A DNA stretch of 64,000 nucleotides from Anthoceros angustus (lineage: Eukaryota > Plantae > Anthocerotophyta), in contig MU008168.1 in the NCBI GenBank assembly GCA_010909165.1, positions 1,054,001 to 1,118,000 on the forward strand. The letters run 5' to 3'. This document shows, piece by piece, positions 4,323 through 62,899 of the stretch. A model generated the notes under the pieces. It searched no databases. It had not been told where the DNA came from and saw nothing but the letters and a program-made list of their open reading frames with translations. A program made the position numbers and the translations under genes. The number at the start of each line of letters is the position of its first letter. The first letter of the stretch is position 1.

Positions 4323-4802
4323 CATTCTTCTGAACACTCTATTCTCAGACTACCACGAACCTGTTATCCTTCTTCTGGAGAAGGCGCATGTGCATCGTGC
4401 AACGTGCTGTTACGCCAACGACAAACATTGACCTCGCTGTTCCTGACGTCATGTTTGAAATGGTTCGAGAAAGTTGATGTATGGTCTAGAGGGAGTGATA
4501 TGCATGCCTTACAAAATGGTCGGTTGGTAAGAGCAAACTTGTACTTGGTCCAAGTCTTAATAGCAGACGTGTTGCTCACTGGACTCTTGTCACAACTCGA
4601 TCTCTGGATAGGTTATTGTTGACTGCCCTAATTGGGCGGCAACAAGAGTAGCGGTATCCAAGGTTTCTAAACTTCAGAGAAGTGCAAATGGGCCACAGAG
4701 AAGTGCAAATGGGCCACTTCTTTATGGCAATTGCTGAGGAGACTAATGTAACTCTTAGCAAAAACCGCTTAAACTAATTCATACATTTTTTGGGTTATCA
4801 TA

Positions 4803-5370
4803 AATGTGTGTCCAAATGGCTTAGGCGAAATGGACACATTTATAAGGTGCTTATAAGGAGTGGGGGTTAGATCGGTACTTAGATGGGCTGCCTAGAAGGA
4901 GTGGGGGTTAAGCCCTAGAAGGAGTGGGGGTTAAGCATCATGGGCTTCGATCGGTACATAGATGTAGTGGGGTGCTTAGAAGGAGTACGGGTTAAGTATC
5001 TTGGGTTTAGATCAGTACTTAGATGGAGTGCGTTGCTTAGAAAGAGTGGGGCTTAGATTTATACTTAGATGGGGTATTTAGAAAGGGTGGGGCTTAAATC
5101 GGTACTTAGATGGAGTGCCAAGAAGGAGTGGAGCGCCTAGAAGGAGTGGGGCTAAGATCGGTAATTAGATGGGTGGTAAAAATGAGTGAGGTGCGTAGAA
5201 GGAGTGGGGCTTAGATCGGTACTTAGATGGGGTGCCTAGCATGAGTGGATGTTACAAGGTGTTAAACATCCTGCACTTAGATCAGTACTTAGATGGGGTG
5301 CCTAGAAGGTGTGGATGCCCTTGGAACATCGTCCTGTGTTTAGATCAATACTTAGATGGGGTGCCTACAA
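4803..5370. repeat. Imperfect ~40-bp minisatellite with a flanking hairpin; member of a dispersed repeat family
   Basis: About 9 copies of a consensus near GATCGGTACTTAGATGGGGTGCCTAGAAGGAGTGGGGCTTA, preceded by the inverted repeat TGTGTCCA...TGGACACA. Related sequence occurs at 15050-15270 (inverted) and 56120-56200. Confidence 0.85.
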
Positions 5371-5856: not shown

Positions 5857-8800
5857 TCAGGTCGAACAACTCCACCTGCAAGGTTTCACACTATCAGCTT
5901 GCAGGTCCTGAAGGCACTCGCAAATCAGAAGTAGGAGAAGTAGTCTCTCTATTTTCATCAACGCTACCTGATGTTCAAATATTTTGGAATGGAACTCGGT
6001 TATCTGCAATTCTTTGGCTTGAAGCTCCTGTATAGTGGAATGGCATCGGTCAGCAAAGGCGACGAGCAAATGGGTCTCGCATACAGAAAGGCGTAGTGCC
6101 ATACCCTTTGAGTTTCTTTGAGAGTCGTCTTCATCTGAGCAAGTTCCTTCTCCATCTTTGTCTTCTCTTCAGAGCTTGTCTGCGACTGGCACCTTGCTGC
6201 CTCCTGCTTGTGCATGGCTCCTAACACCTTCTCCTTCAGCTCTCTCTTTTCCTTGAGGGCAGTCGCCAGCTTTTCCTCTAAGACAGCCTGGCTGTTTAGG
6301 GCAGCTTTCAACCGCTGCTCTTGCTCCTCCAGTTTCTTCTCCAAGTCCTTTGTTGTTGTGTCCGTGTCCAAGGACTTGGCTGCACACAAGCTTTCTGTTT
6401 CTTCCAACATCCTTCCCTGGATCGCCAGTTTCTTCTCCGCCTCCTCCTTGAGCCGGAGAGTAGATCTCAACCTCATTTCTGCACTCTCCTGAAGCTGGGA
6501 AGCCACTTGTAGCTTCTTGTCGATCTCCTCGAGTGCCTTGAGGCTGGCCTTGAGCTTGGTCTCCATCTCTTTCTTGTTTTTCATCAGATTGAACACTTCT
6601 TCTTCCAGCTCGTCGATGGAGGCCATGGCAGACGTAAGCTTCTTCCTCATCTCCTCCTTCTCTGTCACAACTGCTTGGAGAGTTTTGTTGGCTTCGTAAT
6701 TTGTACTACGGGCCTCTGCCAGCTTGCCCTCCAGTTCTTCATTGATGCGCAGAGCTGTGAGGAGTTTATCGTGGAATTCAGCAGCTTGTGTTCTCCTCAT
6801 GCCATCCGAAGACGGTCTCGTATCCAGCGAGCTCATGTCACCAGCTTGCAGCTTGCGATCTTGCCACGATCCCTCAAGGTGTTCCTGTGCCTTGCGGCTG
6901 CCACCATTGGAATTGAAACTGTCACCATGGAAGTAGTCTTTGCTTGTGGTGCGTCGCGGCTCCTCCTCACCTTCGTACTGACCAGAACGCAGCATTGGCA
7001 ACACGTGAGTCTTCTTTAGTGGCCAGTTCTCCATCCCTTCTACACTGGCACCAGCTGCCCATGAATTCACAGGGAGAGACATACCTGCTCGAAGTCCTGA
7101 TTGTGCTGGTGACCTGAGTAGCCAGCTCTGAATTCTCTAGAGTCATCCACAAGCGAGCCATGGCCCTCCGACTGCGCAACAGAATAGACATCTTCCCTAT
7201 CCTGGTTAAATGCCACATCTTCTTCTTGGCCTGGACGACACGCGTCCCAGCGCAGGACGGCTGTTTTTGGGGATGGCGGGCTGAGATCCTGTCCTTCTGG
7301 TAGCGGTCCCAAGGGGGGAGCGGGTGGGAAGTTGAGGGATATGGAGAGGCTGTTCATCGATCCCTCCGACTTGCAGTCTTCCCCTGGCCGACCACCGACC
7401 CGTGGATGTGGTTGCACCAGCAATGCGTAAACCTGTGTGCAATGTTTTGCGTGTTTGAGATCATTCGTGCATCGCTAGGGACGAAGCCAGGAAAATGGTA
7501 GATGGTGAAGCTCAACCTGGTTGCTGAGGGATGCTCCATGCCCTCCAAAAGCCAGAAGAAAGGTCTTGTTGCTGCTTCGGACTTTCACCACACTGAGACC
7601 CTGAAAGCAAGCGGCAAGCGTAAAAACATTCAATTCTTCGCCGTTGGACATGTTGCAGAAGATTTGCTTCAACAGAGTACGTTGATCCTGGACCACACTC
7701 TTGGCAATCTGACCCCTGCAGCCGGTACTCACATCATTTGCAAGCGGTGATCCCGACCGAACGTTGTTCACCACCGACCATTCACGCTTCTCCAGATCAA
7801 ATGCTAGAGTCTCCTGCACTTCTGCAAATTGGAGGACAAAGGCGATGGAAGACCGAGGTGTGGAAGCACCCGGATCAGAGTGTCAGTAGCTGATCAAGCA
7901 TCACATGTGTTGATTTCAAGGTGAGAGAGAGAGAGGATCAGACCTTCGCCCCTGGACTCTCCCCCTACGATAAACCACTTGGATCCTGCAATGGCACCAG
8001 CTTGGCCTGCTCGTGGTTTGGGACTTGCTCCTCTCACTTTCTCCCGTGTCCATTCCATCTGCAATGGCCCAGGTGCGTGAATAGGCAGGCTGGCTGGCTG
8101 GAAGGTTGCAACGAGAGGTGGAAGATGAAGCAGACTCACAGTTTGGAAATCCAAGCAATGCACGTCATTGAGGTATCCGGCCCGGGACTTGCCCCCAAAC
8201 ACCCACATGTAGCGATCGCCGTAACAGGCAGCAGAATGGTCTCTCCGCGGTGCAGGCTTGGGTCCTCTGCAAAAAGAAGAGCTTCTGAAGGGTCCGCAGC
8301 CACAGTGTGACTTGTGAGCACGCCCAACTTCAAGTGGAGGCAATGGGGCACCTACGTGGTCTTGAGAGGAAGCCAAACCAGGTGCTTGAGGTCGAAGATG
8401 TGCAGGTCGTTCAAGATCCTGCCCTTGACATCTTCCCCTCCAAACATGATGAGCATAAATCCCACTTGTACGATGGTCTGCCCGCACCTTGCCGTCTGTG
8501 ACACTTGACCACATGTATTAATAATCAGTGTGGCCAGCTCAGTCTCAAGGGATCTGGATGAGCTCAGCTCAGTTTATGTCATGTGAATCCATTCCCCGCC
8601 ATGCCATATTACAGCTTGATTGAGTCACAGTCACAGTCACAGTTACTGCAGGCAGATCTACATACCGGTACATCACCCTTGGGGCAGACCAGGGACCAGC
8701 AGTGACTCTCCAAATTCAACCTGTGAACTGCAATCCGCAGGCTGTTTGTTCAGAACACATGTGTATAGAGATCTGCCTGGCCAGAAATTGTGTCAAGATT

Positions 8801-13383: not shown

Positions 13384-14763
13384 CTATCTATCAACCTCGC
13401 CGAAGACAATGTCCTGAGTCCCGATGATGGTAACCACATCCGCCAGCATGTGATTCTTGGCCATGAAATCCAGACCCTGCAGATGCCCGAAGCCAGGGGC
13501 ACGGATCTTACATCTGTAGGGACGATTGGAGCCGTCGCTGACGAGGAAGACGCCAAACTCGCCCTTAGGAGCCTCGACGGCGGTGTAGGTGGATCCCGGA
13601 GGAACAGTGAAACCCTCGGTATAGAGCTTGAAGTGGTGGATCAACGACTCCATGGACTGCTTCATCTGGGATCTGGAAGGAGGCACCAGCTTGCGGTCAT
13701 CCGCCTTGATCATGTCCCCGGACGGCATCTGGTTGAGGCACTGGATGATGATCCTCAGGCTCTGCCGCATCTCCTCCACGCGGCAGCAGTAGCGGTCGTA
13801 GCAGTCCCCAGACGTCCCTACGGGAATGTCGAAATCCAAGCGGTCATACACATCATACGGCGAGGCCCTGCGCAGGTCCCAGCGCACTCCAGATCCCCGC
13901 AACATGACGCCGGAGAAACCCCAGTCCATGGCGTCCTTGGCCGACACAACCCCAATGTCCACCAGCCGCTGCTTCCAGATACGGTTGTTGGTGAGCAGCT
14001 CCTCAATCTCGTCGATCCTGGACGCGAACTGTTGCGCGAAGAGGAAGATGTCCTCGCTCAGGCCGAGAGGCAAGTCCTGCGCGACCCCGCCGGGGCGGAT
14101 GTAGGCGGCGTGCATCCGCGCCCCGGACACCCGCTCGTAGAACTCCATCAGCTTCTCCCGCTCCTCGAAACCCCAGAGGAAGGGCGTGAGCGCTCCTACG
14201 TCCATGGCATGCGTGGTTACGGCCATCAGGTGGTTCAGCAGGCGCGTGATCTCGGAAAATAGCACCCGGATGTACTGCGCCCGCAGCGGGACCTCCACGT
14301 TCACCAGCTTCTCCACGGCCAGGGAGTATGCGTGCTCCTGACACATCATGGAGACGTAGTCCAGGCGGTCGAAGTAGGGCAGCGCCTGGAGATAGGTCTT
14401 GTACTCGATCAGCTTCTCCGTGCCTCTGTGGAGGAGGCCGATGTGCGGCTCCGCCCGCTCCACCACCTCGCCGTTCATCTCCAGCACCAGCCGCAGCACG
14501 CCGTGAGCAGCCGGGTGCTGCGGCCCGAAATTGAGCGTGAAGTTCTTGATCTGCTTCTTCTTCTTGCTTGCGGGCTCCATGGCGGTGGTGGCCGAGGTGG
14601 AAGCCCATGCTGCTGCTCCTGCTCTGCCTCCTGCTAGATCATTTCCCGCTCCAGCTCCAGCTCCAGCTCCGGCGGCAGCAGCCAGGGCGCCATCCCGCAG
14701 CGCGGCTGACAGTGCGGCAAGGCCGCCTCGGAGAACGCCCTTGCCTGCCTTCACCAATGCCAT
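13384..14763 (-). CDS. nad7: Nuclear-encoded NADH dehydrogenase subunit 7 (complex I 49-kDa subunit) with N-terminal targeting extension, intronless
   Basis: [27 protein letters not shown]...[11 protein letters not shown]...[18 protein letters not shown]. The first ATG (14763) adds about 60 aa of Ala/Gly/Arg/Leu-rich sequence. The ORF-track start at 14919 is a TTG. Codon third positions are GC-rich. Confidence 0.97.
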
Positions 14764-15049
14764 CGTCGACTTCCCCTTAGCTCCTCCAGCTAGAACCTCC
14801 TTCTTCTTGCTGCCACCGGTGAAGGAGGCACTTTTTAGGGTCACCCGGAACACAACATTCCGCTTCTCAGAATTTGCATCCGGCACCGGCAGCGCTTTCG
14901 CAACGAGCGGGACAACCAACTGGCCCGTAACTTTTCTTCACGTGGATTTTCCCAAGCTCAATTCCGTATGGATATTAACTCAGATTTTAATTTACCGCGC
15001 GGACGTAGCATCTTCAATTTTATTTAAGTCCACTAAGGAGGATATTCGT

Positions 15050-21889: not shown

Positions 21890-24800
21890 AAGTTTGGGCA
21901 CTCCTACTTTTTGGATCAAAAAGGATCAAACTAGAGCAAAACTAGAGCAGAGCTGAAGCGAACGGGAGAGAATTGAAGTGAAGTGGAAGAGAATTGTCAG
22001 AAGATCTTGAGGCAATTTGTTGGAGAATGAGGAGTAGAGGGTGAAGGCAATTAAGCCAAGGAAGTAGCTTGAGGTTGCTGCACAAGCAGCTGTTGATAGG
22101 CTTGCAGAGGCAAAGGCCTGATTATTGGGGACCACCACCAAGTTTGAGGGGAAGGCAAAGTAATTTGCCACATGTGTGGAAGAAGTGAGACATGGGCAGG
22201 TGCTCATATTGCTGAGATTTTGCAGTAAGGAGGACTGCTAGGTAGAGATGTGTGGCAAGGGTTGCTGCAGGAAGATGGGCCAAGTGCCCGTAATGGTGGA
22301 ATTGTGCAGGATCTGCTGCAGGGCTCTAGGTTGGGAGCTCAGCATGCGAGAGAGGAGCAGCAATCGGTGCAAGGATGGGAGCGAGGAGCTCATGTTCAGG
22401 GTGAGCAGCCACAAGGGTTGCAAGAGGAGGCCATGGCGGTGCCGAGGCACATGGAAGTGCTCTCAATGGAGTCACGATGTGAGGATGGCATGATAGGGCC
22501 GTGTGTTGAACTAGGAAAGGCCATGGTAGAGCACTCACGGCAGGCTGAATTTGTAGCTGGGCTGCAAGATGGAGGTGTGGCCAAACCATAGGAAGGCAGT
22601 GTTGCAGGTGGGCTGCAACATGGTGAAGGGATCACAACGGGGTGTGCATCATGACGGCGGAATTTGCAGTGGGGCTGCAAGTCAAAGTGAAGGGAGGCCG
22701 TTGTGGTGGCCGCGAGGAGAAATGGGTAGCAAGGAGGGTTGATACGAGATGTTGTTGAGGTGTGAGGAGTTCATCGGGGAATAAGTCCAGTTTATTCAAG
22801 TTGAGTGTTGTGCACAAGCCAATTGGGTGTGTTGGACAATGGAAGTGTAAGAACTCCAAAGTTAAGCGTCCTAGGGGTGGATCAGTACCGGGATGGGGCA
22901 CCTTTTGTGTGAGGTGTTTCAGCTTATTATATTTGCAGAAGTCACATGAGAGCCCTAGGGGTAGGTGTAGGGTGATAGTTGGTACAAGAATGGAGGGGCT
23001 CCTACATGGACGGAAGCCAGTGCATAGGGTGTCAAAAGCTGGTACGTGGGGGTGGCTACGAATGGAGGGGCTGTACGTGGGGTGGTACAAGAATGGAGGG
23101 GCTCCCTACATGGTAGGATGTAGGGTGTAGTGGGTAGGTAGGTAGATAGGTAGGTAGATGGTAGTGGGCGTGGGGCATGGCACTCCCTCGTGGGAGGAGG
23201 TGCACCCTACGAGGGAGGTGCACTCTATGTATGTATGTATTCATGTATATGGGTAGGGTGGTGTGGGGTAGTATAATGGAGGGGCTCCCTACATGGTAGG
23301 GAGGTGTAGGGTGTAGTGTAGGGTAGTAGGATGGTAGTGGGTAGGGCATGGCACTCCGTAGGGAGGAGGTGCACTACGGAGGGAGGTGCACCCTACGGAG
23401 GGAGGTGTGTGCATGTATGTGTATATTCATGTATTCATGTATTCATGTATATGGGTAGGGCAGTGCGTGTCCATAGGCACCGTCCCCACCGATGTAGGGA
23501 ACAAGTAGGGGATAGAGATGCGGTAGGTAGGGTGACTGTGGTGGCCCTACATGGTAGGATGTAGGGTGGTGGACTCACCAGAACTAGGTAGGTAGGTAGA
23601 TGGGTAGGGTGAGTGTCTCCCTGGTAGGGAGAAGTGAGGTCTCTCCCTAGGCGGCGGAGTGGGGCGACACCTACTTGGATACTTGGGAAGCAAGCTTAGA
23701 TTAGGCGGTTTCGTGTTTCAACCTAGGAAGTTGTTAAAAAGGGCTATATGCAAGGTTGAGGATAAATAGGGTATATTAGGAATAATAATCCATAAATATG
23801 TAAGGTGGTGTGGGGTGTTTATAACAAGTAGGGCTACTAAATCGAGGACGGTGGAAATAGTGCCACATGGCAAGGAATCAACGGTATATCAAGAGTTTTT
23901 GTCACTACCAAAGGCCATGCAAGCGGGTGTGTGAGTGGCACCTAGGAAGTGAGGAATCGCGAGGAAGAGCTTGGGCATGCAGGAAAGCTAGAGCAAGGAC
24001 TTGGTGGGAGCGGTGCCGTGTGTGTGCAAGGAGAAGGAGGTGTGCGTGCGTAAGGAGTTGTGTGTGAAGGATTTGAAACTGGTGAAGAGAGCAAGGGCGC
24101 TGATTTTGTGTGCCTAACCTTGCAAGTGAGGGATTTGGGCGTAAGGAGGTGTATGTTGTGAGGACATCAAGTTTGAGCTAGGTGGGATGTGGAGTGAAGA
24201 GGAAGTAAGTGGAAAAGTGAAGTTGCTCTCTTGGTGGATTTTGTGTGGCAGTGAAGAAAGCTTGCAATTGTGCGTGGGGCGGGGAGCCGGAGAAGAGCCC
24301 AACACATCCGGCGGTATATGGAAGGTAGAGGATGACTCGGAGGAGGAAGAGGAAGGCATGGAGCAAGATCCGCTCACGGGAGACCTTCTTGGTGGAGGCG
24401 TGGAGGCGGTAGGGCCATAAGAAGTGACCCTCGTCCGTAGGAGGTGTAGAGGGTGGCCCTACATCCGTAGGATCACCGAGGCGACGCATCTAGAGGTAAT
24501 TGAAGAGGGTGGTGGTAGCTTGGAGGCTGGGCTCATTGCTTGGGGAGACTTTTCTTTAGGAGGACAGGCATTAATGCTTGTCAACCCAGTGGGGTGTGAC
24601 TAGCTGGATAGGAATGTTGACAGAGCCATTAAGGCTCACATAGGTGAAGTTGCTAGAATAGAATTTCACCCAAGATGCTTGGATGTCGAACTTAAAAACG
24701 AGGATACACTAAAATAAGGAGTGAGGCGGTGCGGAGGGCGCGCCGAGGAGGCTGTGAGGACCTCCTACAAAAGGAGGGAGCTTGTGAAGTAAAATTATCG

Positions 24801-27800
24801 TGTCTTGCGCTCCCACTCATGAGTCCTTTGCTCCTTGTGAAGGAAGTTCGTGCGTGCAAGCTAACGTGGTCTGGTAGAGAGGGAGTTTGCGGTGAGTGCT
24901 TGGCGGAGAGCTCGCTCCTTGCGGCGCCTGCAGTTGCTCCTTGTGAATGGTTCTTTGTGAAATTGCTTTGCTTTGGGTGTGTGGCGATGCCCAAGGAACT
25001 CTCGGCTTGAGGGTAGACTACAGGAAAGACTCGGAGGTTCTCATTGTCGGTGCAAACTCATAGCAACCGCCCAAGGAAGAACTTGTTGGCTTGTAGGCGG
25101 ACCCAGGCGGTGCCGTGTGTGCAAGGGCGAGCTAGGGCCGGTGAGCTTGAAGTAAGGTTAGATTAGGAGGATGAGGAGTTGAGTTGAGGTGAGTGTATGT
25201 TGAGGAGAATGTGGAGCTGAATGTTGAGTAGAGGAGTAGGTAGAGATTAGGAGTAAGAAGAAGGCCCAAGTCGAGCCTAAGGGAGGGGTCCCAAATGCAC
25301 CAAACCGAGACCGGAAGCTAAGGTCTCAAAATCACGGGTGGAGAAGTCGCGCTACGTAGGGGGTCCCTGTGCGTGACGGTGGACCTATAGTCGTGGGGTG
25401 TGGACCTATAGTCGTGGGGTGTCGTTGTAGGTCCGTGGAGTGGTGGCGGAGCGGCGTCGAGGGTGAGTTGTGGTTGAGGTGTGCCAATTGTGGGAAGGCG
25501 ATGGGAAAGGAATAGTGGACGATCACGGGTGGTGAAGTCGCTGCAACGTAGGGGGTCCCTGTGGCCCGACCTACCGTGGGGTGTGGACCTATAGTCGTAG
25601 GGTGTCGTTGTAGGTCTAGAAGCGGTGATTGACGGAGCAGCACGGTGAGGCGTGGCTGCTGTATGTGGAGTGAGTTGAAGTTGCTCCAGCTGTGTGAGGG
25701 AGCTTGGGGGTGTGAAGAGGTGTGTGGTTTGTGCCTTGGATGCTGGTGACCTGACAAACAAGAGTCTCATGGGACGAAACCTATTGTACTTAGCGACAGT
25801 GGGATAAGTGTGGCCACTAGAGGGTGAATCTCGGAAGCCCCGGGTTTTCCTCCCACATTTTTGGCGCGCCGTTGGGACTCTTTGCTTTGGCAAGTCGGTA
25901 GTGGAAGAGGCATGAACATTGTTGAGAATCTCTAATCGGGGATGAGAAGAAGAAGTTTTATTGCGGGGCATAGAGAGGAGATCGCCGCTGATTTTTGCAA
26001 GTGGTGTGAGAGTTGCATGACGTGTAGAGGAAGAAGGCGAGAGAGAGCTCTTGCGGAGGAAGCTACATGTGCTAACATCTTCAAGGGTTCATGAGGAAGA
26101 AGAGGTAGTTTCTAAGAGCGGAGAAGGATGTGCTCACGGACAACAAGAGGAAGGAGGTTCTGTCTGGTGCAAACTCATAGCAACCGCCCAAGGAAGAACT
26201 TGTTGGCTTGTAGGCGGACCCAGGCTTGTCAAGGGCGAGCTAGGGCCGGTGAGCTTGAAGTAAGGTTAGATTAGGAGGATGAGGAGTTGAGTTGAGGTGA
26301 GTGTATGTTGAGGAGAATGTGGAGCTGAATGTTGAGTAGAGGAGTAGGTAGAGATTAGGAGTAAGAAGAAGGCCCAAGTCGAGCCTAAGGGAGGGGTCCC
26401 AAATCGCACTACCGGAAGGTCGGCTAAGGTCTCAAAATCACGGGTGGAGAAGTCGCTGCAACGTAGGGGGTCCCTGTAGACGGTGGACCTATAGTCGTGG
26501 GGTGTGGACCTACAGGATGTCGTTGTAGGTCCGTGGAGTGGTGATTGACGGAGGCGGCGGGAGTGGCCGCGCGAGTTGGTGGTTGAGGTGTGCCAATTGT
26601 GGGAAGGCGATGGGAAAGGAATAGTGGACGATCACGGGTGGTGAAGTCGCTGCAACGTAGGGGGTCCCATGTGCCGACCTCTACCGTGGGGTGTGGACCT
26701 ATAGTCGTGGGGTGTCGTTGTAGGTCTAGAAGCGGTGATTGACGGAGCAGCATGGTGAGGCGTGTGGTTGAGGTGAGTGAGTTGAGGTTGCTCCAGCTAT
26801 GTGAGGGAGCTTGGGGGTGTGAAGAGGTGTGTGGTTTGTGCCTTGGATGCTGGTGACCTGACAAACAAGACGAAACCTATTGTACTTAGCGATAGTGGGA
26901 TAAATGTGGTCACTAGAGGGTGAATCTCGGAAGCCCTGGGGTTTTCCTCCCACATTTTTGGCGCCGTTGCCGGGGGACTCTTTGCTTTGGCAAGTTGGTA
27001 GTGGAAGAGGCATGAACATTGTTGAGAATCTCTAATCGGGGGATGAGAAGAAGAAGTTTTATTGCAGGCATAGAGAGGAGATTGCCCCCGCTGATTTTTG
27101 CAAGTGGTGTGAGAGTTGCATGACATGTAGAGGAAGAAGCTGAGGAGAGAGCTCTTGCGGAGGAAGCTACATGTGCTAACATCTTCAAGGGTTCTGTTGA
27201 GGAAGAAGAGGTAGTTTTCTAAGAGCAGGAGAAGGATGTGCTCACGGACAACAAGAGGAAGGAGGTTGTCGAGGAGTTCTTGACCGGTGAGGGTCAAGAA
27301 TTGAGCCAGTTAGTAATTTCGAGGGATTTGGAGGTCGAGCTAAGAATGCGAGCATGAGAGCGCTATTCTGCGTGGGGCGTTGGTTAGAAGAAAGAGCTTG
27401 AGAGTGGGCATATGTTGTTGCTTCCGCCCAAGATTTCATGAGGATGATGTCTAGGAGGAAGTGGAGGTCGTGCTCTTGACCAATGGATAGTTTATGGAGG
27501 CTAGGTGGTGGAGGGCTTTACTTTGAGGAAGAGGGCCCACCGAGGGGACATGCTCAAGGTTCTGTTGCCTTGACTGTGGTTGAGAGGAGAACTTGAATTC
27601 GAGCTTGGAGGGCTTGGATGCTTCTTTTGGCATCAAGGAGGAAGTAATTGACGCCATTGAGCAGGTTGTGTAGCTATTCGCTGGGAGATGTCTAAGGCCA
27701 TTGAAGAGCGGGCGAGTGCTTCCAATTTATTGTCGTGGAGTGTTCTTGTTGTATCGTGACGGGTTGGTACCGTGCTCAAGATGGGGTTGCCTATGTTGCG

Positions 27801-30800
27801 AGGAGTCAAGTGGAGGAGCTATCTCAAGGAGGTTGCTTCAAGTTGCATCTCGAGGCTTTGCTTTGTCTTGATAGGAGCAGATTGGAGATGGAAGACGACA
27901 AGGAACGAGGTGGGGAGAGAGTCACTTGAAGGAATTTGGAAGAAATTTGGGGAGGAATTGTGGATTGAAGTGGACATCTTAAGGGAGGAGTGACGACCAA
28001 AGCCTTGAAGAGAGGAATTGCAAGCTTTGGAAGTTGCTGCGAAGGATTATGTGGAAATTTGGTGGGAGGCTTGGGAGCATTCATGGCACATTTAGGAGCT
28101 CTGAGGTCTTGGAATTTGGAAGATGTCCCTTCCACAACATGCACAGACAACGAGATGGAGAGGTTGTGTTTCTGCAAGGAAGTGATGTTTTGTATTTTCA
28201 CGGGAAAGTGTACGTAGCTAGGGAATCTAACATGACAACCACTTGTCACTACGATGAATGGCTGGAAGGCGATGGAGTATCTACAATGGTAGGTTGTTTG
28301 CGGGGACGCAAACAAGTGAGGTGGGGAGTATGTGGAATATGAAAGTTTGGGCACTCCTACTTTTTGGATCAAAAGGATCAAACTAGAGCAAAACTAGAAA
28401 TGAGCGAGCAGGAGAGAATTGAAGTGAAGTGGAAGAGAATTGTCAAGATCTTGAGGCAATTTGTTGGAGAATGAGGAGTAGAGGGTGAAGGCAATTAAGC
28501 CAAGGAAGTAGCTTGAGGTTGCTGCACAAGCTGATGATCTTCGCAGGCAAAGGCCGATTATTGGGGACCACCACCAAGTTTGAGGAAGGCAAAGTAATTT
28601 GCCACATGTGTGGAAGAAGTGAGACATGGCGGTGCTCATATTGCTGAGATTTTGCAGTAAGGAGGACTGCTAGGTAGAGATGTGTGGCAAGGGTTGCTGC
28701 AGGAAGATGGGCCAAGTGCCCGTAATGGTGGAATTGTGCAGGATCTGTTGCGGGGCTCTAGGTTGGGAGCTCAGCATGCGAGAGAGGAGCAGCAATTGGT
28801 GCAAGGATGGGAGCGAGGAGCTCATGTTGAGGGTGAGCAGCCACAAGGGTTGCAAGAGGAGGCCATGGCGGTGCCGAGGCACGTGGAAGTGCTCTCAGTG
28901 GAGTCACGATGTGAGGATGGCATGATATGGTCGTGTGTTGAACTAGGAAAGGCCATGGTAGAGCACTCACGGCAGGCTGAATTTGTAGCTGGGCTGCAAG
29001 ATGGAGGTGTGGCCAAACCATAGGAAGGCGGTGTTGCGGTGGGCAACATGGTGAAGGATCACAACGGCGTGCATCATGACGGCGGAATTTGCGGTGGGGC
29101 TGCAAGTCAAAGTGAAGGGAGGCCGTTGTGGTGGCCGAGGAGAAATGGATAGCAAGGAGGGTTGATACGAGATGTTGTGAGGCGTGAGAAGTTCACCGAG
29201 GATAAGTTCATTTTATTCTTGATGAGTGTTATGCACAAGCCAATTGGGTGTGTTGGACAATGGAATGTAAGAACTCCAGTTAAGCGTCCTAGGGGTGGAT
29301 CGATCGGATGGGGCACCTTTTGTGTGAGGTGTTTCAACTTATTATATTTGAAGTCACATGAGAGCCCTACGAGTAGGTGTAGGGTGATAGTTGGCCCTAC
29401 AAGAATGGAGGGGCTCATGGTGTGAAGGGAGGTGCATAGGGTGTCAGGTGAGGTGGGATGGTGTGGGATGGTAGTGGACGTGGCATGGGAGGTGTGGGAT
29501 GGTGTGGGATGGTAGTGGACGTGGGGCATGGCACTCCCCGTAGGAGGGAGGTGCACCCTACGGAGGAGGTGCACCTACGTGGAGGCGGTGAAGGAGGTGC
29601 ACTCTATGTATGTATGTATGTATTCATGTATTCATGTATTCATGTATATGGGTAGGACGGTGCGTGTCCATAAGTAGGGGCACCTTGTCCCTACAGGTAG
29701 GAACAAGTAGGGGATAGAGATGCGGTGGTATGTAGGGTGACCGGTGGCCCTACATGGGTAGGATGTAGGGTGAGGTCTCCCTACGGGGTAGTTAGGTAGG
29801 TAGATGGGTAGGGTGAGAGTGTCTCCTCCCTGTAGGGAGAAGTGAGGTCTCCCTCATTGGGCGGAGTGGGGGTGCGACACCTACTTGGATACTTGGGAAG
29901 CAAGACTTTCAACCTAGGAAGTTGTAAAGAGGCTGTATATACAAGGTTGAGGATAAATAGGGTATATTAGGAATAATAATCCATAAATATGTGGGGTAGT
30001 GTAGGGTGTTTATAACAAGTAGGGCTACTAAATCGAGGAGTGGAAATAGTGCCACATGGCAGGAATCACGGTATCAAGAGCTTGTCACTACAGGGCCATG
30101 CAAGCGGGGTGTGTAGGGAGTGGCACCTAGGAATCTGTGAGGAATCGCGAGCTTGGGCATGCAGGAAAGCTAGAGCAAGGACTTGGTGGGAGCGGTGCCG
30201 TGTGTGTGCAAGGAGAAGGAGGTGTGCGTGCATAAGGAGTTGTGTGTGAAGGGATTTGAAGCACAGTGAAGAGAGCAAGGCGCTGATTTTTGTGTGTGGA
30301 CCTTGCAAGTGAGGGATTTGGGCGCGTAAGGAGGTGTATGTTGTGAGGACATCAAGTTTGAGCTAGGTGGGGCTGGAGTGAAGAGGAAGTAAGTGGAAAA
30401 GGGGTGAAGTTGCTCTCTTGGTGGATTTGTGTGGCGAGTGAAAGCTTGCAATTATGCGCGTACAAGGCACCGGGGAGCGGGAGAAGAGCCCAACATCCGA
30501 GGTATATGGAAGGCCGTGAGGATGACTCGGAGGAGGAAGAGGAAGGCATGGAGCAAGATCCGCTCACGGAGACCTTCTTGTGGAGGCGTGGAGGCGGTAG
30601 GGCCATAAGAAGTGACCCTACGTAGGAGAGGTGTAGAGGGTGGCCCTACATCCGTAGGATCACCAGGCGGTGCGACGGCATCTAGAGGTAATTGAAGAGG
30701 TGGTGGTAGCTTGGAGGCGTGGGCTCATTGCTTGGGGAGACTTTTCTTTAGGAGGACAGCATTAATGCTTGTCAACCCGAGGGGTGTTGACTAGCTGGAT

Positions 30801-32050
30801 AGGAATGTTGAGAGCCATTAAGGCTCACATAGGTAGAATTTGCTAGAATAGAATTTCACCCAAGATGCTTGGATGTCGAACTTAAAATCGTGAGGATACA
30901 CTAAAATAAGGAGTGAGGCGGTGCCGGAGGCGCGGAGGTATGTGAGGACCTCCCTATAAAGGAGGGAGCTTGTGAAGTAAAATTATCGTGTCTTGCGCTC
31001 CCAAACTCATGAGTCCTTTGCTCCTTGTGAAGGAAGTTCGTGCTGCAAGCTAACGTGGCGTCCGGTAGAGGGAGTTTGCGGTGGTCGGAGTGCTTGGCGG
31101 AGGCTCGCTCTTGCGGGCGCCTCTGCAGTTGCTCCTTGTGAATGGTTCTTTGTGAAATTGCTTTGCTTTGGGTGTGTGGCGATGCCCAAGGAACTCTCGG
31201 CTTGAGGGTAGACTACAGGAAAGACTCGGAGGTTCTCATTGTCAGTGCAAACTCATAGCAACTGCCCAAGGAAGAACTTGTTGGCTTGTAGGCGGACCCA
31301 GGCGGTTGTCGTAAGGCGAGCTAGGGCTTGAAGCTTGAAAGGTTAGATTAGGAGGATGAGGAGTTGAGTTGAGGTGAGTGTATGTTGAGGAGAATGTGGA
31401 GCTGAATGTTGAGTAGAGGAGTAGGTAGAGATTAGGAGTAAGAAGAAGGCCCAAGTCGAGCCTAAGGGAGGGTCCCAAATGCACCAAACCGAGGGCGGAA
31501 GGGGCTAAGGTCTCAAAATCACGGGGTGGTGAAGTCGCGTTGCAGCGTAGGGGGTCCCTTGAGCGGTGGACCTACCGGTGGCGGGACCTGTTGGGATGTC
31601 GTTGTAGGTCTAGAAGCGGTGATTGACGGAGGCGGTCAGGAGTGGCGCGCTGCTGTCGAGTTGGTGGTTGAGGTGTGCCAATTGTGGGAAGGCGATGGGA
31701 AAGGAATAGTGGGCGATCACGGGGTGGTGAAGTCGCGTTGCAGCGTAGGGGGTCCCGTGTGGCCGGACCTCTACCGTGGGGTGTGGACCTATAGTCGTAG
31801 GGTGTCGTTGTAGGTCTAGAAGCGGTGATTGTGGAGGCGGCATGGTGAGGCGTGGCATGCGTGGAGTGAGTTGAAGTTGCTCCAGTGTGAGGGAGCTTGG
31901 GGGTGTGAAGAGGCGTGTGGTTTGTGCCTTGGATCTTTGGTGACCTGACAAACAAGAGTCTCATGGGACGAAACCTATTGTACTTAGCGACAGTGGGATA
32001 AGTGTGGCCACTAGAGGGTGAATCTCGGAAGCCCCGGGGTTTTCCTCCCA
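21878..32050 (-). mobile_element. Degenerate retroelement-like unit (~5.3 kb) in head-to-tail tandem with an extra internal ~1.1-kb duplication; class uncertain
   Basis: 21878-25870 recurs at 28330-32050, and 25040-26150 recurs at 26160-27250. The + strand is strongly G-rich. Only weak minus-strand protein hints are visible (zinc-knuckle-like CMLWKGHL near 28130; RT-like WVKFYSSNFTYVSLNGS near 24640). The duplications are certain, but the TE class is not. Confidence 0.55.
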
Positions 32051-36313: not shown

Positions 36314-39300
36314 ATGGCCACAGTATGGCAACCGGACCCGTTGTGGACCCAACAAATTGGTGTGTGTACAGGGATACTAGCAGGAGCTCCCGCTCACCTC
36401 ACCTCAGGGAGTCAAGCCCTGGCAAACGACCAAGCCTTCAGGTGCAACAGTGTAAGGAGCACAGCACTTCCACTTCCGACAAAATGTGTGGGTGGGGACG
36501 GATTTTCGAGCGATCGTCGGCGCCAGGAGCAGGAGCACTTGTGGCAACAATTTTTCTGGACCCTGCAATGTGGTGGGACAGCAGACGAGATAAGATGAGC
36601 TCCCGTTCCCCTGACTTTCGGTGTAACGGGTCTGACGAGGTCCTGTGGTTAAACAACATGTTCAAGCCTGCTTGGGTTGATGAGCAGCTCGTTTCCTTGG
36701 ATATGCAGATGGGCCATGGTGCCTTTCCTTCCAAGTCGAGCTCTCCGGAGAAGCCTGAACCTGTCAGGCGTGCAGGATCAGAAATGGGCGTCGTAACGGC
36801 TGGAACCGTGAGCATGTTATGTCAGCAGGGGAAGCTTTGTGAGGCCGCTGAAGCCCTGGAATCTCTGGCGCAGACAGATTCTGCCATTTCTCAGTCCCTG
36901 TTTTACACCGTGCTGAAACTGTGTGCAGCTAAGAAGGATATGGTTGTGGGGCGACGAGTACATGATCTCGCTGCCAAACTTGGGTACGAGTCTAATACAT
37001 ATTTGGGGAACCATATCTTGCGCATGTATGCATGTGGAGGTAGGCTGCAGGATGCCATGCACGTGTTCACTAGGGTGGGCAAACCAGATACCTTCATGTG
37101 GTTTTCCATAACGCTAAACATGGGAAGCCTGAACAGGCCATACAACTGTACCATGAGATGCGTGGATCAGGAGTGAAGGCGAATGGTCACGTCTTTGTAG
37201 CAGCCCTTCAAGCTTGTGCATTTGCCACCGACTTGGAATCTGGCAGACAAGTGCACAGTGATGTGTTGCACTGTGGCATTCCAACTAACTTGTTTGTTGG
37301 CACCTGCCTGGTGGACATGTATGCAAGATGTGGCGAACTGGAAGATGCACGCCGGGTTTTTGAAAGCTTGGCCACAAAGGATGTGGTGACATGGAATGCC
37401 CTGATTGCTGGGTATGCACAGCAAGGGCTCGGAAAGAGGCGCTTGTTGTATGGACAAATGGAGCAGGAGGCCTGATTTTGGCTAACCATGTTACTTTTGC
37501 TTGCCTTCTGAAGGCCTGTGCAAGCACTGGTGCCTTACAGAAGGGCAGGCAGCTGCACTCACAGATTGTTGAAAGAGGACTGATGTAGTGGTGGGCAACT
37601 GCCTGGTGGACATGTATGCAAAATGTGGTGAACTGGAAGATGGCCAGGTTTTGACAGCTTGGCCACAAAGGATGTGGTGACATGGAATGCCCTGATTGCT
37701 GGGTATGCACAGCAAGGGCTCACAGAGGCGCTTGTGTATGGACAAATGGAGCAGGAGGGCCTGATTTTGGCTAACCATGTCACTTTGCTTGCCTTCTGAA
37801 GGCCTGTGCAAGCACTGGTGCCTTACAGAAGGGCAGGCAGCTGCACTCACAGATTGTGGAAAGAGGCGCTTGTGTATGGACAAATGGAGCAGGAGGGCCT
37901 GATTTTGGCTGACCATGTTACTTTTGCTTGCCTTCTGAAGGCCTGTGCACTGGTGCCTTACAGAAGGGCAGGCAGCTGCACTCACAGATTGTTGAAAGAG
38001 GACTGCTGGATGATGTGGTGGGCAACTGCCTGGTGGACATGTATGCAAAATGTGGTGAACTGGAAGATGGTTTTGACAGCTTGGCCACAAAGGATGTGGT
38101 GACATGGAATGCTGATTGCTGGGTATGCTCAGCAAGGGCTCGGGCAAGAGGCGCTTGTTGTTAGACGAATGGAGCAGGAAGGCCTGATTTTGGCTAACCA
38201 TTTTACTTTTGCTTGCCTTCTGAAGGCCTGTGCAAGCACTGGTTCCTTCCAGCAGGGCAGGGAGCTGCACTCACAGATTGTTGAAAGAGGACTGCTGGGT
38301 GATGTAGTGCTGGGCAACTGCCCGGTGGACATGTATGCAAAATGTGGAGAACTGGAAGATGGTTTTTGACAGCTTGGCCACAAAGGATGTGGTGACATGG
38401 ACAGTGCTAACTGCTGGGTATTCCCAGCAAGGGCTCGGACATGATGCACTTTTAGTGTATGGACAAATGGAGCAGGAGGGGGTGATTTTGGCCAACCATG
38501 TCACTTTGCTTGCCTTCTGAAGGCTGTGCAAGCACTGGCGCCTTACAGATGGGCAAGCATCTGCACTCACAAATTGTGGAAAGAGGACTGCTGGATAGCA
38601 TAGTGTTGGGCAACTGCCTGGCGGACATGTATGCCAAATGTGGTGAACTGGAAGATGCACGCCAGGTGTTTGACAGCTTGGCCACAAAGGATGTGGTGAC
38701 ATGGAATGCCCTGATAGCTGGGTATGCACAGCAAGGACTGGGCTAGGAGGCGCTTATTCTGTCTGGACAAATGGAGCAAAATGGTCCCACTTTGGCTGAC
38801 CATGTTACTTTTGCTTGCCTTCTGAGGGCCTGTGCAAGCACTGGGGCCTTACAGATGGGCAGGCAGCTGCACTCACAGATTGTCAAAAGAGGACTGCTGG
38901 ATGACGTAGTGTTGGGCAACTGCCTCGTGGACATGTATGCCAGATGTGGTGAACTGGAAGATGCACGCTGGGTTTTTGACAGCTTGACCTCAAAGGATGT
39001 GGTGACATGGACGGCGCTGATTGCTGGGTTTGCTCAGCAAGGGCTCGGACTTGAGGCCCTTGTTGTGTATCGACAAATGGAGCAGGAAGGTCTGACCGTC
39101 GCTAACCATGTTACTTTTGCTTGCCTTCTGAAGGCCTGTGCAAGCACTGGCGCCTTAAAGATGGGCAGGCATCTCCACTCACAGATTGTGGAAAGAAGAC
39201 TGCTAGATAATATATTGGTGGGCAACTGCCTGGTGGACATGTATGGGAGTAAACTAAAGGGAGTAGGATGGGAGGTCCCATTAGAAGAATCCCATTTATA

Positions 39301-39761
39301 GAGTTCCCAATTAGGGGGGGCCGACTGTACATCGATTTTTAGTGGGAGAAAGAAGAGAGGACATTGCGCTTAAGGCAGAGATCACGAATGCACGTGTGAA
39401 GCAGGAAGGAGGCCACGTACCTCACACAAAATTGGTGTGGAGGCCACTGTGTGAGAAGGAAAAGGAAGATGCGCTTTGTGGGCATGCCGAGAAGCTAGCT
39501 CTGGCGTTTGGTTTTTGAACACTCCAAGTTGGACACCTCTGGTGGTAACGAAAAATCTACGCATGTGCAGTGATTGCCACAGTTCCAACAGTCAACACAC
39601 TGTTACTCGTCGGACTCACAAAGCACCAAAAAGTACTCTGTGGAGGTTTCCAGCCCACGGAGATCATGTCGAGGGTTGAACAGAGAGACATTGTTGTTAG
39701 GGATGGGTACCGTGTCCATCGATTTGCAGTTGGCTCTTGCAGTTGTAAGGGTCGACTGTGA
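36314..39761 (+). pseudogene. PLS-class PPR gene with N-terminal PDF-like motif and DYW:KP-type deaminase (ends GRL*), disrupted (locus A)
   Basis: MATVWQPD...LWQQFF/LDPAMWWDSRRDK...SPDF. P-L-S triplets VVTWNALIAGYAQQGLG / HVTFACLLKAC / GNCLVDMYAKCGELEDA. Deaminase motifs GHAEKLALAFG, KNLRMCSDCH and HRFAVGSCSCKGRL*. The locus has multiple frameshifts, has lost the E domains, and has a 70-bp insertion in the DYW domain. Confidence 0.88.
37380..39245 (+). repeat. Tandem array of near-identical 306-bp PLS-triplet units (6 units plus one partial)
   Basis: GATGTGGTGACATGG starts at 37380, 37671, 38093, 38386, 38690 and 38996. An intact unit is 306 bp (P36+L35+S31 aa). Confidence 0.92.
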
Positions 39762-58743: not shown

Positions 58744-61391
58744 TCACGGCCGACCCTGACAACTGCAAGAACCAGCAGCGAATCGATGCACACGGTACCC
58801 ATCCCTTACAACAATGTCTCTCTGTTCAAGCCTTGACATTATCTCCGTGGAACTGTGGCAGTCACTGCACATGCGTAGATTCTTAGTCACCACCAGAGGT
58901 GTGCCACTCGGCATGTTCAAGAGACCATAGGCCAAAGCTAACTTCTCAGCATGCCCACAAAGCGAATCCTCCTTTTCCTTCTCAGACAGTGGCTTCAACA
59001 CCAACTTTGTCTGTGGTATATGGCCCCCTTCCTGCTTCAGACGTGCATTCGTGGTCTCTACCTTGAGCGCAATATCCTCTCTTCTTTCTCCCACCGCAAA
59101 TGTATGCACCTGCTTATTCACCTCAATGGTCACCACTGCAGGTTTCTTGTTAGCTCCTGCCACCATTCTCTGTGTTTCAACCCTGTCTACATCGCTCCAC
59201 CTACCTGCATCTGCGTAGGCATTGGCCATGAGCGCGTATGCGGGCGCATCCTGGGGGTCCAGCCTAACAATGCTTTCAAAACACCAGATCGCCCTCTCTA
59301 TATCCCCATGACTTTTGCAGGCATTCAACAAACACCTTAAGCACACAAGATTACTTTGGCCCTCGCATTGAGCATCTTCTCTGCTTCATCTAAATGGCCT
59401 GCACGTCCAAGCAGATCAATCATGCAAATGTAGTGCTCAATAGTAGGTTTGATGCCGTGCTGTTCAGCCATGGGATCAAAGTGCTTACAACCCTCGTGGA
59501 CCAGTCCCCCGTGACTGCATGCTACCAAAAGGCAAGTAAAAGTAGCATCATTAGGCTGAATACCGGCAACTAACATCTCCTCAAAACAAGCTAGTGCTTT
59601 GTGACCTTCATCACAAGTACCATAACCCGATATGAGGGCCGTCCATGTCACTACATCCTTTGTGTCCATGCTGTCAAAAACCTGCCGGGCAGCGTCCACT
59701 TCACCACATTTTGCATACATGTCCACCAGGCAGGTGCTCAACACTACGTTACCCAGCAGTCCTCGTTCCACAATCTGTGAGTGCAGCTGCCTGCCCTTCT
59801 GTAACGCACCGGTGCTTCCACAGGCCTTCAGAAGGCAAGCAAATGTCAAATCATCAGCCAAAATGAGGCTCGCCTCCTCCATTTGACCATACACAACAAG
59901 CGCCTCTTGGCGGAGTCCTTGCTGAGCATACCCAGATATTAGGGCATTCCCTGTCACCACATCCTTCGTGGCTAAGCTGTCAAACACCTGGCGTGCATTT
60001 TCCAGTTCACCACATTTTGCAAACATGTCCACCAGACAGTTGCCCAACAATGGGTCATCCAGCAGTCCTCTGTCAACAATCAGTGAGTGCAGCTGTTTGC
60101 CCTTCTGTGAGTCACCAGTGCTTCCACAGGCTTCGAGAAGGCAAGCAAAAGTAACATAGTTAGCCAAAATCAGCCCCTCCTGCTCCGTTTGTCCATACAG
60201 AACAGTGCCTCATGTCCGAGACCTTGCTCCGCATACCCAGCTATCAGGGCATTCCATGTCACCACATTCTTTGTGTTCATGCTGTCAAAAACCTTGCGAG
60301 CATCTTTCAGTTCACCACATTTTGCATACCCAGATGTAATTTGGTATTTTTGAAAATAAATCAAAACAACCCCGGGGGAACAATCAGCTCGCCACATTTT
60401 GCATACATATCCAGCAAGCAGTTGCCAACGAACAAGTTACTAGGAAGACCACTGTGCAACACATCACGGTGCACTTTTCTGCCAGATTCCAAGTCGGCTG
60501 CAAATGCACAAGCTTGAAGGGCAGCTACAAAGACATGCGCATCCGCCTTCACTCCTGACCTACGCATCTCATGGTACAGTTGTATGGCCTCAGTTGGTTT
60601 CCCATGCTTAGCATATGCAGAGATTATGGAAAACCACATGAACGTATCCATGGCCTCCTGAAGACTACCTGCTCCTGCATACATGCGCAAGATATGGTTC
60701 CCCACGCATGCATCCGACTGGAGCCCAAGTTTGACAGTGAGATCATGAACTCGTCGCCCGACAGCCAGATCCTTCTTAGCTGCACACAGTTTTACCACAG
60801 TGTAAAACAGAGACAGAGAAATGACAGCGTCTGTTTGCGCCAGAGATTCAGGGCTCCGACGGCCTCAGAAAGCTTCCCCTGCTGACATAACGTGCGCACG
60901 GTTACAGCCGTTACGACGCCCTTTCCTGATCCTGGACGCCTGCCAGGTTCAGGCTTATGCGGGGAGCCCGACTCGGAAGGAGTGGCACCATGACCCATCT
61001 GCCTATCCAAGGAAACGAGCTGCTCATCAACCCACGCTGGCTTAAGCATGTTGTTTAACCACAGCACCTCGCCGGACCCCTTACGCCGGATGTGAGGCGA
61101 ACGGGAGCTCTTCTTATCTCGTCTGTTGTCCCACCACATGGTAGGGTCCAGAAAAAATTGTTGCCACAATCGCTCCTGCTCCTGGCGACGACCATCGCCG
61201 GACAGCTCGTCCTGACCCACAGATTTTCTGGAAAACGGAAGCACTGGGCTCCTCACACTGCTGCACCTGAAGGCTTCGTTTGCCAGGGGTTGAGGCTCTG
61301 CAGTGAGGTGAGCGGGAGCTCCTGGTAGAATCTCTGTACACACACCAATTTGTTGGGTCCACACCGAGTCTGGTTGCCTTACTGTTGTCAT
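58744..61391 (-). pseudogene. PDF-like motif + PLS PPR + E1/E2 + DYW:KP (GRP-type) putative U-to-C editing factor (locus B); frameshifted in this assembly
   Basis: LWQQFFLDPTMWWDNRRDK...EVLWL...PAWV; PLS triplets; P2-L2-S2; E1/E2; then KKPAVVTIEV...GHAEKLALAYG...KNLRMCSDCH...HRFAAGSCSCQGRP*. Single-base frameshifts lie near 60850, 60200 and 59350, and there is a ~55-bp insertion at about 60330-60384. Confidence 0.9.
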
Positions 61392-62370
61392 AGTTTAAAG
61401 ATTGCTGTCGGACGAGTCTAACAACATCCTAGCAGGCTGCTCCTACCTGTGTATGACCACACCACCCTGAAGCAGAGGGCAGACGGTCTTCTACTTTTAC
61501 AGACAAAACTTATGCTTGCAACACCGTATTCATTAGATCTACATATGTAAAGTTTTATCGGAAGCGAAGGGATTACGCGAAGACGCAGATGTTGGCATAG
61601 CCCATACAAAACGTGGCTGGTCCGCTTGAGCGGAATATTTTCTGAAAGTAGGGGTCCCTTAGAAAGCGAATAGTCAGCCACATTAATGATAGGGAAGATT
61701 GAGGAGGAAATGGGGCAATAAGAAAGAGCTCTGAAATTGTGCCGGAAAGTGAATACAAGTGCTTGGGCATGGCTCTTGGGCAGTGTGTGTGTCTGTGCTT
61801 CAAGCAGATATAGATATCCATTGCTGTTGCTAAGACTACTATGAAAAGTGAAGAAGACTACGGATTCTCTCCTACCTAGTTGTTTATCCTCGAGGTTTCT
61901 GTGCTGTGAATGGTTGACCTTACCCCCATCGTATATTATATGACTAACTACTAGAGTCAGGTTCACCTTCTTGGTTGACGGTGACGCGGCATATTTAATG
62001 TGTGACTGGTTGGAAACTGCGTGAAGTTACAAGGGTTGCCTCCATCTCTAGATCCTGTGAGTCCCTCCCTTTACCTACCAGACTTGGAGACACCCTTCTT
62101 AGCCGATAGTCACGCTACATATCTAGTGTGCGGCCGTTGGAAACTCTGTGACCTTCCAATGCTTGGCCACAATTGTAGTCATTGTGAGTCAGTCTCCCCA
62201 CACATGTGATTAGCCATTTTCGCTTGTTGAATCATCGAAGTCACAGAAGCATGAAGCCCTGAGAATGCCATCACCTCTTGTCCTCCTGCTTTTGCCTTGG
62301 GAGAAAGTCTCTGTTAACAATTTCTTCATTCCCGAAAGAGAGGAAAGTTAGTGCAAGCCCTCCATGTCCG

Positions 62371-62559
62371 GTTTCAGTTTGGACTGGAATTCTTGCGTGT
62401 AAGAAGGTTAGAAGGGCCTCTGTAAGAAGGTTAGAAGGGGTTTCAGTTTGGACTGGAATTCTTGCGTGTAAGAAGGTTAGAAGGGCCTCTGTAAGAAGGT
62501 TAGAAGGGGTTTCAGTTTGGACTGGAATTCTTGCGTGTAAGAAGGTTAGAAGGGCCTCT
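62371..62559. repeat. 69-bp tandem repeat, about 2.7 copies
   Basis: GTTTCAGTTTGGACTGGAATTCTTGCGTGTAAGAAGG... starts at 62371, 62440 and 62509. The subunit TGTAAGAAGGTTAGAAGGG occurs 5 times. Confidence 0.92.
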
Positions 62560-62899
62560 GGGCCATTAAGGACATGCATCAGGCCCTCTTGGGCTAAATG
62601 AATTTTGAGTTGAATGGAGTCAACTGGTTTGGATTGGATCCTAGACTTCGTTATATTAATCAACGTACACTGGCAAAATACTCATGACTTGCGTATCAAA
62701 AAGGGAGAATCCTTCAATTGCAAAAGACTTGGGATTTGTTTTTGAGAACGAATACTAGAATGCTGCGATTATAAAATACTCAATTGAAGTGATGATGAGT
62801 ATGATAAGTATTTTGGGAGTCATGATAGAGTATTGATAACGTACCATGGTGACAATGACCGCACTGACTGCACTGACTGCATTGACTGCACTGACTGCA

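Follow-up and report, generated by a model that had tools for sequence, protein, structure and literature searches.

OSB proteins, PPR editing factors and the hornwort loci

PPR RNA-editing factors are usually described as a PPR array preceded by a targeting peptide and followed by C-terminal E/DYW domains. Those of hornworts that end in a DYW:KP deaminase fall into two subgroups, one of which takes its name from the terminal residues GRP, and U-to-C editing has been shown for designer KP proteins only (PMC9478123). The second family of relevance here, OSB, is characterized by the PDF motif, which spans ~50 residues and follows an OB-like domain (PMC6963530, PMC6451138, PMC4166229); the PDF of OSB1 was reported to be sufficient for binding single-stranded DNA (ssDNA) (PMC6963530, PMC6451138). 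The window analyzed in this study, i.e. a whole stretch of 64,000 nucleotides from the hornwort Anthoceros angustus (assembly GCA_010909165.1, contig MU008168.1, positions 1,054,001 to 1,118,000 of the forward strand), contains two loci in which elements of both families are combined. Locus B (58744..61391, minus strand, numbered from the first nucleotide of the window) is a putative pseudogene of a PDF-PLS-E-DYW:KP PPR editing-factor gene of the GRP type. It is broken into five open reading frame (ORF) pieces and was delineated from these ORFs, from Pfam matches and from its colinearity with residues 81-753 of an intact relative, P0104. Locus A (36314..39761, plus strand), which was defined by DNA alignment and tblastn, is an inverted paralogue ~19 kb away and likewise appears to be a PDF-PLS-E-DYW:KP pseudogene. 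Both loci represent a known domain placed on a known protein family, in a combination that is widespread and appears to be undescribed.

PDF-PPR proteins share with OSBs a PDF of ~50-60 residues with the same near-invariant positions (W, P, W, D, R, K, P-D-F, L-W, P, W) and its occurrence in one to several tandem copies, both groups being organelle-targeted plant proteins. However, in OSBs an OB-fold-like domain lies N-terminal to the PDFs, and PPR, E and DYW are lacking, whereas in PDF-PPRs the PDF itself is N-terminal, the OB-like domain is absent and the partner is an RNA-editing PPR array. With the GRP-subgroup PPR-DYW:KP proteins, candidate or designer hornwort U-to-C editors, the loci have in common the PLS array, E motif, KP box, HxE, CxDCH and GRP; descriptions of this subgroup cover the PPR array and the C-terminal domains but mention no N-terminal PDF, and the copies in the window, unlike those editors, look like frameshifted pseudogenes. 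RRM-PPR fusions and ORRM proteins offer another parallel, since they too combine a sequence-specific PPR tract with a second, general nucleic-acid-binding domain; fusions of this kind have been catalogued from plants at large (PMC13386178). A kingdom-wide survey of editing-factor fusions from 2026 used the hallmark domains of known factors and mentions neither PDF nor OSB (PMC13386178), and an OSB survey of the same year retained only proteins with both OB and PDF domains (PMC13393729). The initial annotation knew of no description of a PDF-PPR-deaminase architecture; our full-text literature searches likewise, aimed at a link between PDF and PPR, found none, a passing mention elsewhere being possible.

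The N-terminal segment of locus B is an OSB-type PDF

The minus strand of 61005-61169 translates to exactly the 55 residues in which the initial annotation had recognized an OSB-type PDF motif. The segment belongs to a 199-residue ORF (60792-61391, minus strand), which we compared with a library of 1.84 billion representative proteins using phmmer. The search matched 452 proteins at E<=1e-3, 89 at E<=1e-10 and 8 at E<=1e-30, and the best 150 of the 452 were inspected. Among these 150, the best-scoring matches lie nearly all within ORF residues ~50-145, corresponding to the PDF motif, many of the proteins carry the motif several times, and the top matches other than PPR proteins include 'protein OSB3, chloroplastic/mitochondrial-like'. 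Furthermore, a hidden Markov model (HMM) of PDF, built from 183 motifs of 125 proteins without PPR repeats, scored locus B at 83.2 bits (E 6e-25) in the six-frame translation of the window, the sole other match being locus A with 65 bits. The motif is thus a true OSB-type PDF, as had been proposed. According to the HMM, the domain comprises ORF residues 65-137 (60981..61199, minus strand) and encloses the originally recognized segment.

Conservation was judged on an alignment of 45 PDF sequences, in which two columns are invariant (D and R) and a further 11 have a conservation of 90% or higher (W, P, W, K, P-D-F, L-W, P and W). Locus B retains 11 of these 13 positions. The D and F of the triad are lost, so that the Pro-Asp-Phe signature reads P-H-I, while locus A and the intact relatives have P-D-F, and P0104 has D-F. 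A Pfam scan of the N-terminal 199-residue piece matched no family, because Pfam contains no PDF model; for the same reason, Pfam-based domain censuses miss the PDF-PPR fusion.

The absence of a visible SSB domain, also pointed out earlier, is borne out by both Pfam and tblastn. Only 64 residues precede the PDF of locus B, and they have no Pfam match that would indicate an OB/SSB domain. Similarly, when the OB-like regions preceding the PDF in 15 OSB-type matches were used as tblastn queries, only scattered, chance-level matches to the window resulted, none of them in locus B or upstream of the PDF in either locus. Judging from its sequence, locus B shares the PDF domain with OSBs but is not an OSB. 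We also considered that the PDF could have been supplied by an adjacent OSB gene, and rejected this since there is no OB-like domain and since PDF and PPR motifs lie in one ORF in locus A.

Architecture and probable decay of locus B

The order of domains in locus B can be followed through the five pieces. The N-terminal leader (ORF residues 1-64; 61200..61391, minus strand, as are all features of this locus) starts with ATG, is conserved in locus A, has no Pfam match and is presumably an organelle-targeting presequence. The PDF is followed by a low-complexity linker rich in Gly, Pro and Ser, after which the first PPR-like helix pair begins (60876..60980); the equivalent region of P0104 is predicted to be disordered. 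A PLS-type PPR array extends over 59367..60855, as indicated by Pfam PPR/PPR_2 matches on three pieces and by tblastn with P0104. It is followed by an E motif (59122..59310; PF20431, 45.4 bits) and a DYW:KP deaminase domain (58747..59025; PF14432, 112.6 bits). By motif position, the KP box KKPAVV (59131-59148) lies just upstream of the deaminase domain, and within the latter are the HAE motif (58927-58953) and the CSDCH motif (58849-58869). The C-terminus reads ...QGRP. Locus B thereby shows the features that define the GRP subgroup: a PLS array and then an E motif, the zinc ligands HxE and CxxCH, a KP box instead of PG, and the GRP end.

Four frame breaks separate the pieces. The first (60849..60850) is the loss of one base relative to locus A (GG to G), seen in the DNA alignment of the two loci, after which the residues resume in another frame. 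The second (60329..60384), apparent as a gap between the tblastn matches to P0104, is a 56-bp insertion within a PPR motif, flanked by a duplicated stretch coding for YAKCGEL. The third (60202..60203) is again a missing base (GG to G) in comparison with locus A, and the fourth, placed at ~59362..59363 by the spacing relative to P0104, shifts the frame just ahead of the E motif. Stop codons are found at 60792-94, 60361-63, 60170-72 and 59337-39, and there is no continuous ORF. In addition, the first L-type motif has a 9-residue in-frame deletion with respect to both locus A and P0104. At each break, homologous residues resume directly in another frame, and P0104 is intronless, so the breaks are lesions and not introns. 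Introns as the source of the frame changes were ruled out accordingly, as homology runs straight into the next frame and the intact relative has none. The 56-bp insertion, the 9-residue deletion and the P-H-I substitution cannot be assembly errors; therefore, locus B is in all likelihood a pseudogene. Of the architecture reported initially, a PDF ahead of PLS repeats, E1/E2 and DYW:KP, the order stands on the Pfam matches, but it is distributed over five frames of an apparent pseudogene with a mutated triad. About 1 kb upstream of the start codon lies a perfect 69-bp tandem repeat (62370-62560; 2.8 copies, 100% identity).

Locus A and the probable in-frame ancestor

Homology between the two loci begins ~100 bp before the ATG and ends ~20 bp beyond the stop codon, and their N-terminal regions are ~91% identical in DNA. 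Locus A is the more damaged of the two: it changes frame at least five times, carries an insertion in its DYW domain and ends in GRL. Tandem duplications of ~300-bp PLS triplets (306 bp in 4.6 copies and 288 bp in 1.9 copies) have enlarged its PPR array. According to ORF translation and the HMM, its PDF core (36550..36705, plus strand) retains the P-D-F triad and shares a 283-residue ORF with the first PPR motifs, so that the PDF is joined in frame to the PPR array in at least this paralogue, as the initial proposal of a fusion implied. The start of the motif, LWQQFF, is cut off from the PDF core by a 1-bp contraction of a T run within LWQQFF itself. The first 1-bp loss in locus B is a different one, ~300 bp further on. 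The lesions of the two loci are independent, and therefore their common ancestor would have had one continuous ORF with leader, PDF, linker and PPR array. Taken as a single claim, the OSB-type identity of the motif and this ancestral architecture are very probably correct. As far as can be told from their sequences, neither locus A nor locus B encodes a protein any longer.

Intact PDF-PPR proteins in non-seed plants

Intact proteins of this layout do exist. About 15 of the 150 listed representatives (of 452) are PPR proteins with an N-terminal PDF. One of them, P0104, is encoded by an uninterrupted, intronless ORF of 753 residues on a 9.1-kb Logan contig of run SRR33208241, a hornwort-like sample. 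It has a PDF at residues 78-146, a PLS array, an E motif and a DYW:KP domain ending in GGRP, and is colinear with locus B at 36-65% identity (tblastn); it is an intact PDF+PLS+DYW:KP ORF of the kind for which the initial annotation had suggested searching. A word-indexed homology search with the PDF region of P0104 matched only P0104 itself, and one with the 199-residue ORF of locus B matched nothing, owing to its length window and word limits. Among the matches listed, named PDF-PPRs come from Adiantum, Ceratopteris, Pteridium, Selaginella, Diphasiastrum and Sphagnum compactum, the last of which ends in a canonical ...DYW. A search with a Diphasiastrum PDF region revealed at least 62 distinct PDF-PPRs of 641-1386 residues in D. 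complanatum, located on many chromosomes, each with one to three PDF copies and a C-terminus of the E, E+ or canonical GDYW type. Public databases label PDF-PPR proteins 'hypothetical' or generic PPR.

Among the intact PDF-PPRs found, the C-termini are E, E+, DYW:PG or DYW:KP. Given these mixed C-termini and the many taxa, the fusion is both common and old, and is not linked to KP-type deaminases in particular. A restriction of the fusion to DYW:KP proteins, or a role specific to U-to-C editing, is therefore not upheld, since the same N-terminal PDF is found on PPRs of Diphasiastrum, ferns, Selaginella and Sphagnum with E, E+ or canonical DYW ends. The lineages with PDF-PPRs have the heaviest editing, some of them with U-to-C editing. 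A conserved, independently folded N-terminal domain on dozens of PPRs would constitute an additional, unstudied part of the editing machinery, and would widen the use of PDF beyond the surveillance of DNA recombination.

Some members of the group have particular arrangements. At a second locus of the same run as P0104, L003 (6001-8506, plus strand, and 2066-5089, minus strand), an ORF with leader and PDF, P0035, is followed after 44 bp by a 657-residue PPR-E-DYW ORF in another frame; the latter has a KP-like box, and a short intron or a frameshift may separate it from P0035. A 1007-residue PPR gene is situated head-to-head upstream. Three tandem N-terminal PDF copies are found on some PPRs, namely P0001 (L002 455-4570) and P0169-P0173 of Diphasiastrum. 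Expansion of PDF copy number has been described for group III OSBs of seed plants, and the three-copy PDF-PPRs mirror it. In Selaginella moellendorffii, a PDF lies at the N-terminus of a 910-residue PPR protein (P0078, XP_024517303.1), and a review table gives no OSB gene for Selaginella (PMC4166229); the PDF in this lineage may survive mainly or only on PPRs.

Evolution and constraint

The tree of 203 PDF motifs (61 columns) is poorly resolved. Nevertheless, loci A and B group with P0104, fern PPRs and P0001 with 97% support in the Shimodaira-Hasegawa-like approximate likelihood ratio test, in a clade of 13 sequences, 11 of which are PPR-linked; the remaining two include P0035. PPR linkage is strongly clustered on the tree, requiring 10 changes versus 19 in shuffles. 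In the approximately unbiased test, with ambiguous fragments removed, a single clade of all PPR-linked PDFs was not rejected (p 0.57). A PDF module of an OSB-like gene presumably joined a PLS PPR gene early in land-plant evolution, and PDF-PLS-PPR genes would then have spread along with PPR expansions.

Between Diphasiastrum paralogues, the median identity of the PDF is 75.9%, versus 68.1% for the PPR tract, and the PDF is the more similar region in 1634 of the 1830 pairs. From these identities, the PDF appears at least as conserved as the PPR tract, which indicates constraint and not a decaying passenger.

Predicted structure of the PDF

Modeled by AlphaFold with the PDF alignment, the domain of locus B has a mean predicted local distance difference test score (pLDDT) of 83, with 85-96 in the core, and a predicted template modeling (TM) score of 0.67. 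The predicted fold consists of a helix, three short strands and a helix. The model of P0104 has the same PDF fold followed by ~15 residues with pLDDT<50 and then by PPR helices with pLDDT>93; on these models, the PDF of PDF-PPRs is predicted to form a module of its own, flexibly tethered to the PPR array. No relative of the PDF was found in PDB, either by a profile search of its sequences or by Foldseek with the predicted structure (best E 5, TM<=0.25). A dsRBD-like fold, considered in view of the order of helices and strands, was dropped, as it had no support from Foldseek.

Possible role of the PDF in PPR editing factors

We propose that locus B derives from a nuclear gene, of which it is a decayed copy, and that this gene specified a PLS-class PPR RNA-editing factor belonging to the hornwort 'GRP' DYW:KP type. 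From the N-terminus onwards, the product of the ancestral ORF would have comprised a leader peptide, one OSB-type PDF, a flexible linker, the PLS PPR array, E1/E2 and the DYW:KP deaminase. We would assign the gene to a large, apparently undescribed PDF-PLS-PPR subfamily of non-seed land plants, in the intact members of which an independently folded PDF mini-domain would be connected by a disordered tether to the PPR solenoid at its N-terminal end. RNA is bound by PPR arrays in parallel orientation, with the N-terminus towards the 5' end, and the PDF would therefore lie on the 5' side of the bound RNA. There, it might act as a sequence-independent clamp for single-stranded nucleic acid beside the specific PPR footprint, raising the affinity or the dwell time of the editing factor on the transcript or, alternatively, keeping the RNA upstream of the cis-element unfolded. 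For this explanation as a whole, we estimate a probability of roughly 0.55. The auxiliary RNA-binding role, drawn by analogy with OSBs, is its most tentative component and by itself somewhat short of even odds. We rank the RNA clamp first, because the PDF accompanies every PLS C-terminus, including E-only, and because editing factors act on RNA; a tether to ssDNA comes second and a protein-protein role third.

Several points weigh against the proposal. Recombinant OSB1 and OSB2 were reported to prefer ssDNA over dsDNA or RNA (PMC4166229), which by analogy favors DNA over RNA as the ligand. The function of PDF-PPRs is here deduced from the role of the PDF in another family, where ssDNA binding is known from the literature for OSB1 and OSB2 only. 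The taxonomic range of PDF-PPRs, including whether seed plants have them, rests on 150 of the 452 matches. A single origin of the fusion is allowed but unproven by a tree of only 61 columns. Finally, two of the breaks in locus B and the break within the motif of locus A are length changes in short single-base runs and may be assembly errors.

The ssDNA preference of OSBs is also the reason for placing second the possibility that the PDF serves as a nucleoid tether. The PDF would hold organellar ssDNA in transcription bubbles, R-loops or intermediates of replication and recombination, gathering the editing factors there and making editing co-transcriptional. We regard this as possible but doubtful. 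The reported sufficiency of the OSB PDF for ssDNA binding (PMC6963530) and the reported preference of OSB1/2 for ssDNA over RNA (PMC4166229) agree with it, as does the retention of the near-invariant aromatic and basic residues of OSB PDFs in the PPR-linked copies, and the flexible linker would suit a localization module. On the other hand, such a tether is not required for the chemistry, as PPR editing factors without a PDF edit efficiently, even in bacteria (PMC9478123). Whether editing factors are tethered to nucleoids has become a testable question, as has the use of an extra clamp for improving natural or designer editors, which makes the PDF relevant to engineered PPR editors.

MORF proteins are the editing helpers of seed plants. 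According to a broader and distinctly less likely reading, PDF-PLS PPRs would be an ancient, numerous and undescribed class of editing factors in hornworts, lycophytes, ferns and some mosses, in which the PDF either couples RNA editors to nucleoid ssDNA (transcription bubbles or R-loops), so that editing is co-transcriptional, or fills a MORF-like helper role. A helper comparable to MORF is also what the PDF would be if it were a protein-protein module, driving oligomerization or recruiting partners such as OSBs or, for E-type factors, a DYW protein in trans. This option, again an analogy, seems improbable to us. In its favor, OSB2 assembles as a tetramer (PMC6963530), the PDF is present on E-only PPRs, which need a deaminase in trans, and all PDF-PPRs named among the matches listed are from non-seed plants. 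However, OSB oligomerization may be driven by the OB-like domain and not by the PDF, the conserved Trp, Arg, Lys and Phe of exposed type resemble a nucleic-acid-binding surface, and the absence of PDF-PPRs from seed plants is not established by 150 of 452 matches.

It is very improbable that the N-terminal PDF has no function, being either a passenger or a chimera of annotation or assembly. In favor of this, both copies in the window are apparent pseudogenes, and the triad of locus B is mutated. By contrast, P0104 provides an intact ORF without introns, the fusion recurs in dozens of independent gene models on many Diphasiastrum chromosomes and in five other genera, and the PDF occurs in up to three copies, with conservation no lower than that of the PPR tract. 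The passenger reading is thus largely refuted for the family and holds only for loci A and B themselves. Least probable of all is the earlier suggestion that the PDF redirects the DYW:KP enzyme to ssDNA for DNA editing or mutagenesis: all that speaks for it is that an ssDNA-binding motif and a deaminase are combined in proteins of the B, A and P0104 type, whereas most PDF-PPRs found either lack a deaminase (E and E+ ends) or have a canonical C-to-U DYW, and the PDF and the catalytic domain lie at opposite ends of a long, RNA-specific PPR solenoid.

Other features of the window

The nad7 gene is mitochondrial in most plants. At 13387-14919 (minus strand), the window has an uninterrupted 511-residue ORF with a full Complex1_49kDa (NAD7) domain (414 bits) and an N-terminal extension of ~240 residues, which, by its sequence, looks like a nuclear copy of nad7. 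A region of ~10 kb (22000-32000) is purine-rich and G-rich, with a very strong positive GC skew of about +0.4 on the plus strand, and the ORFs in it have no Pfam matches. An ORF at 7897-8514 (minus strand) contains Kelch repeats of the KLHDC2/KLHL20 type (E 4e-17) and is probably one exon of a nuclear gene.

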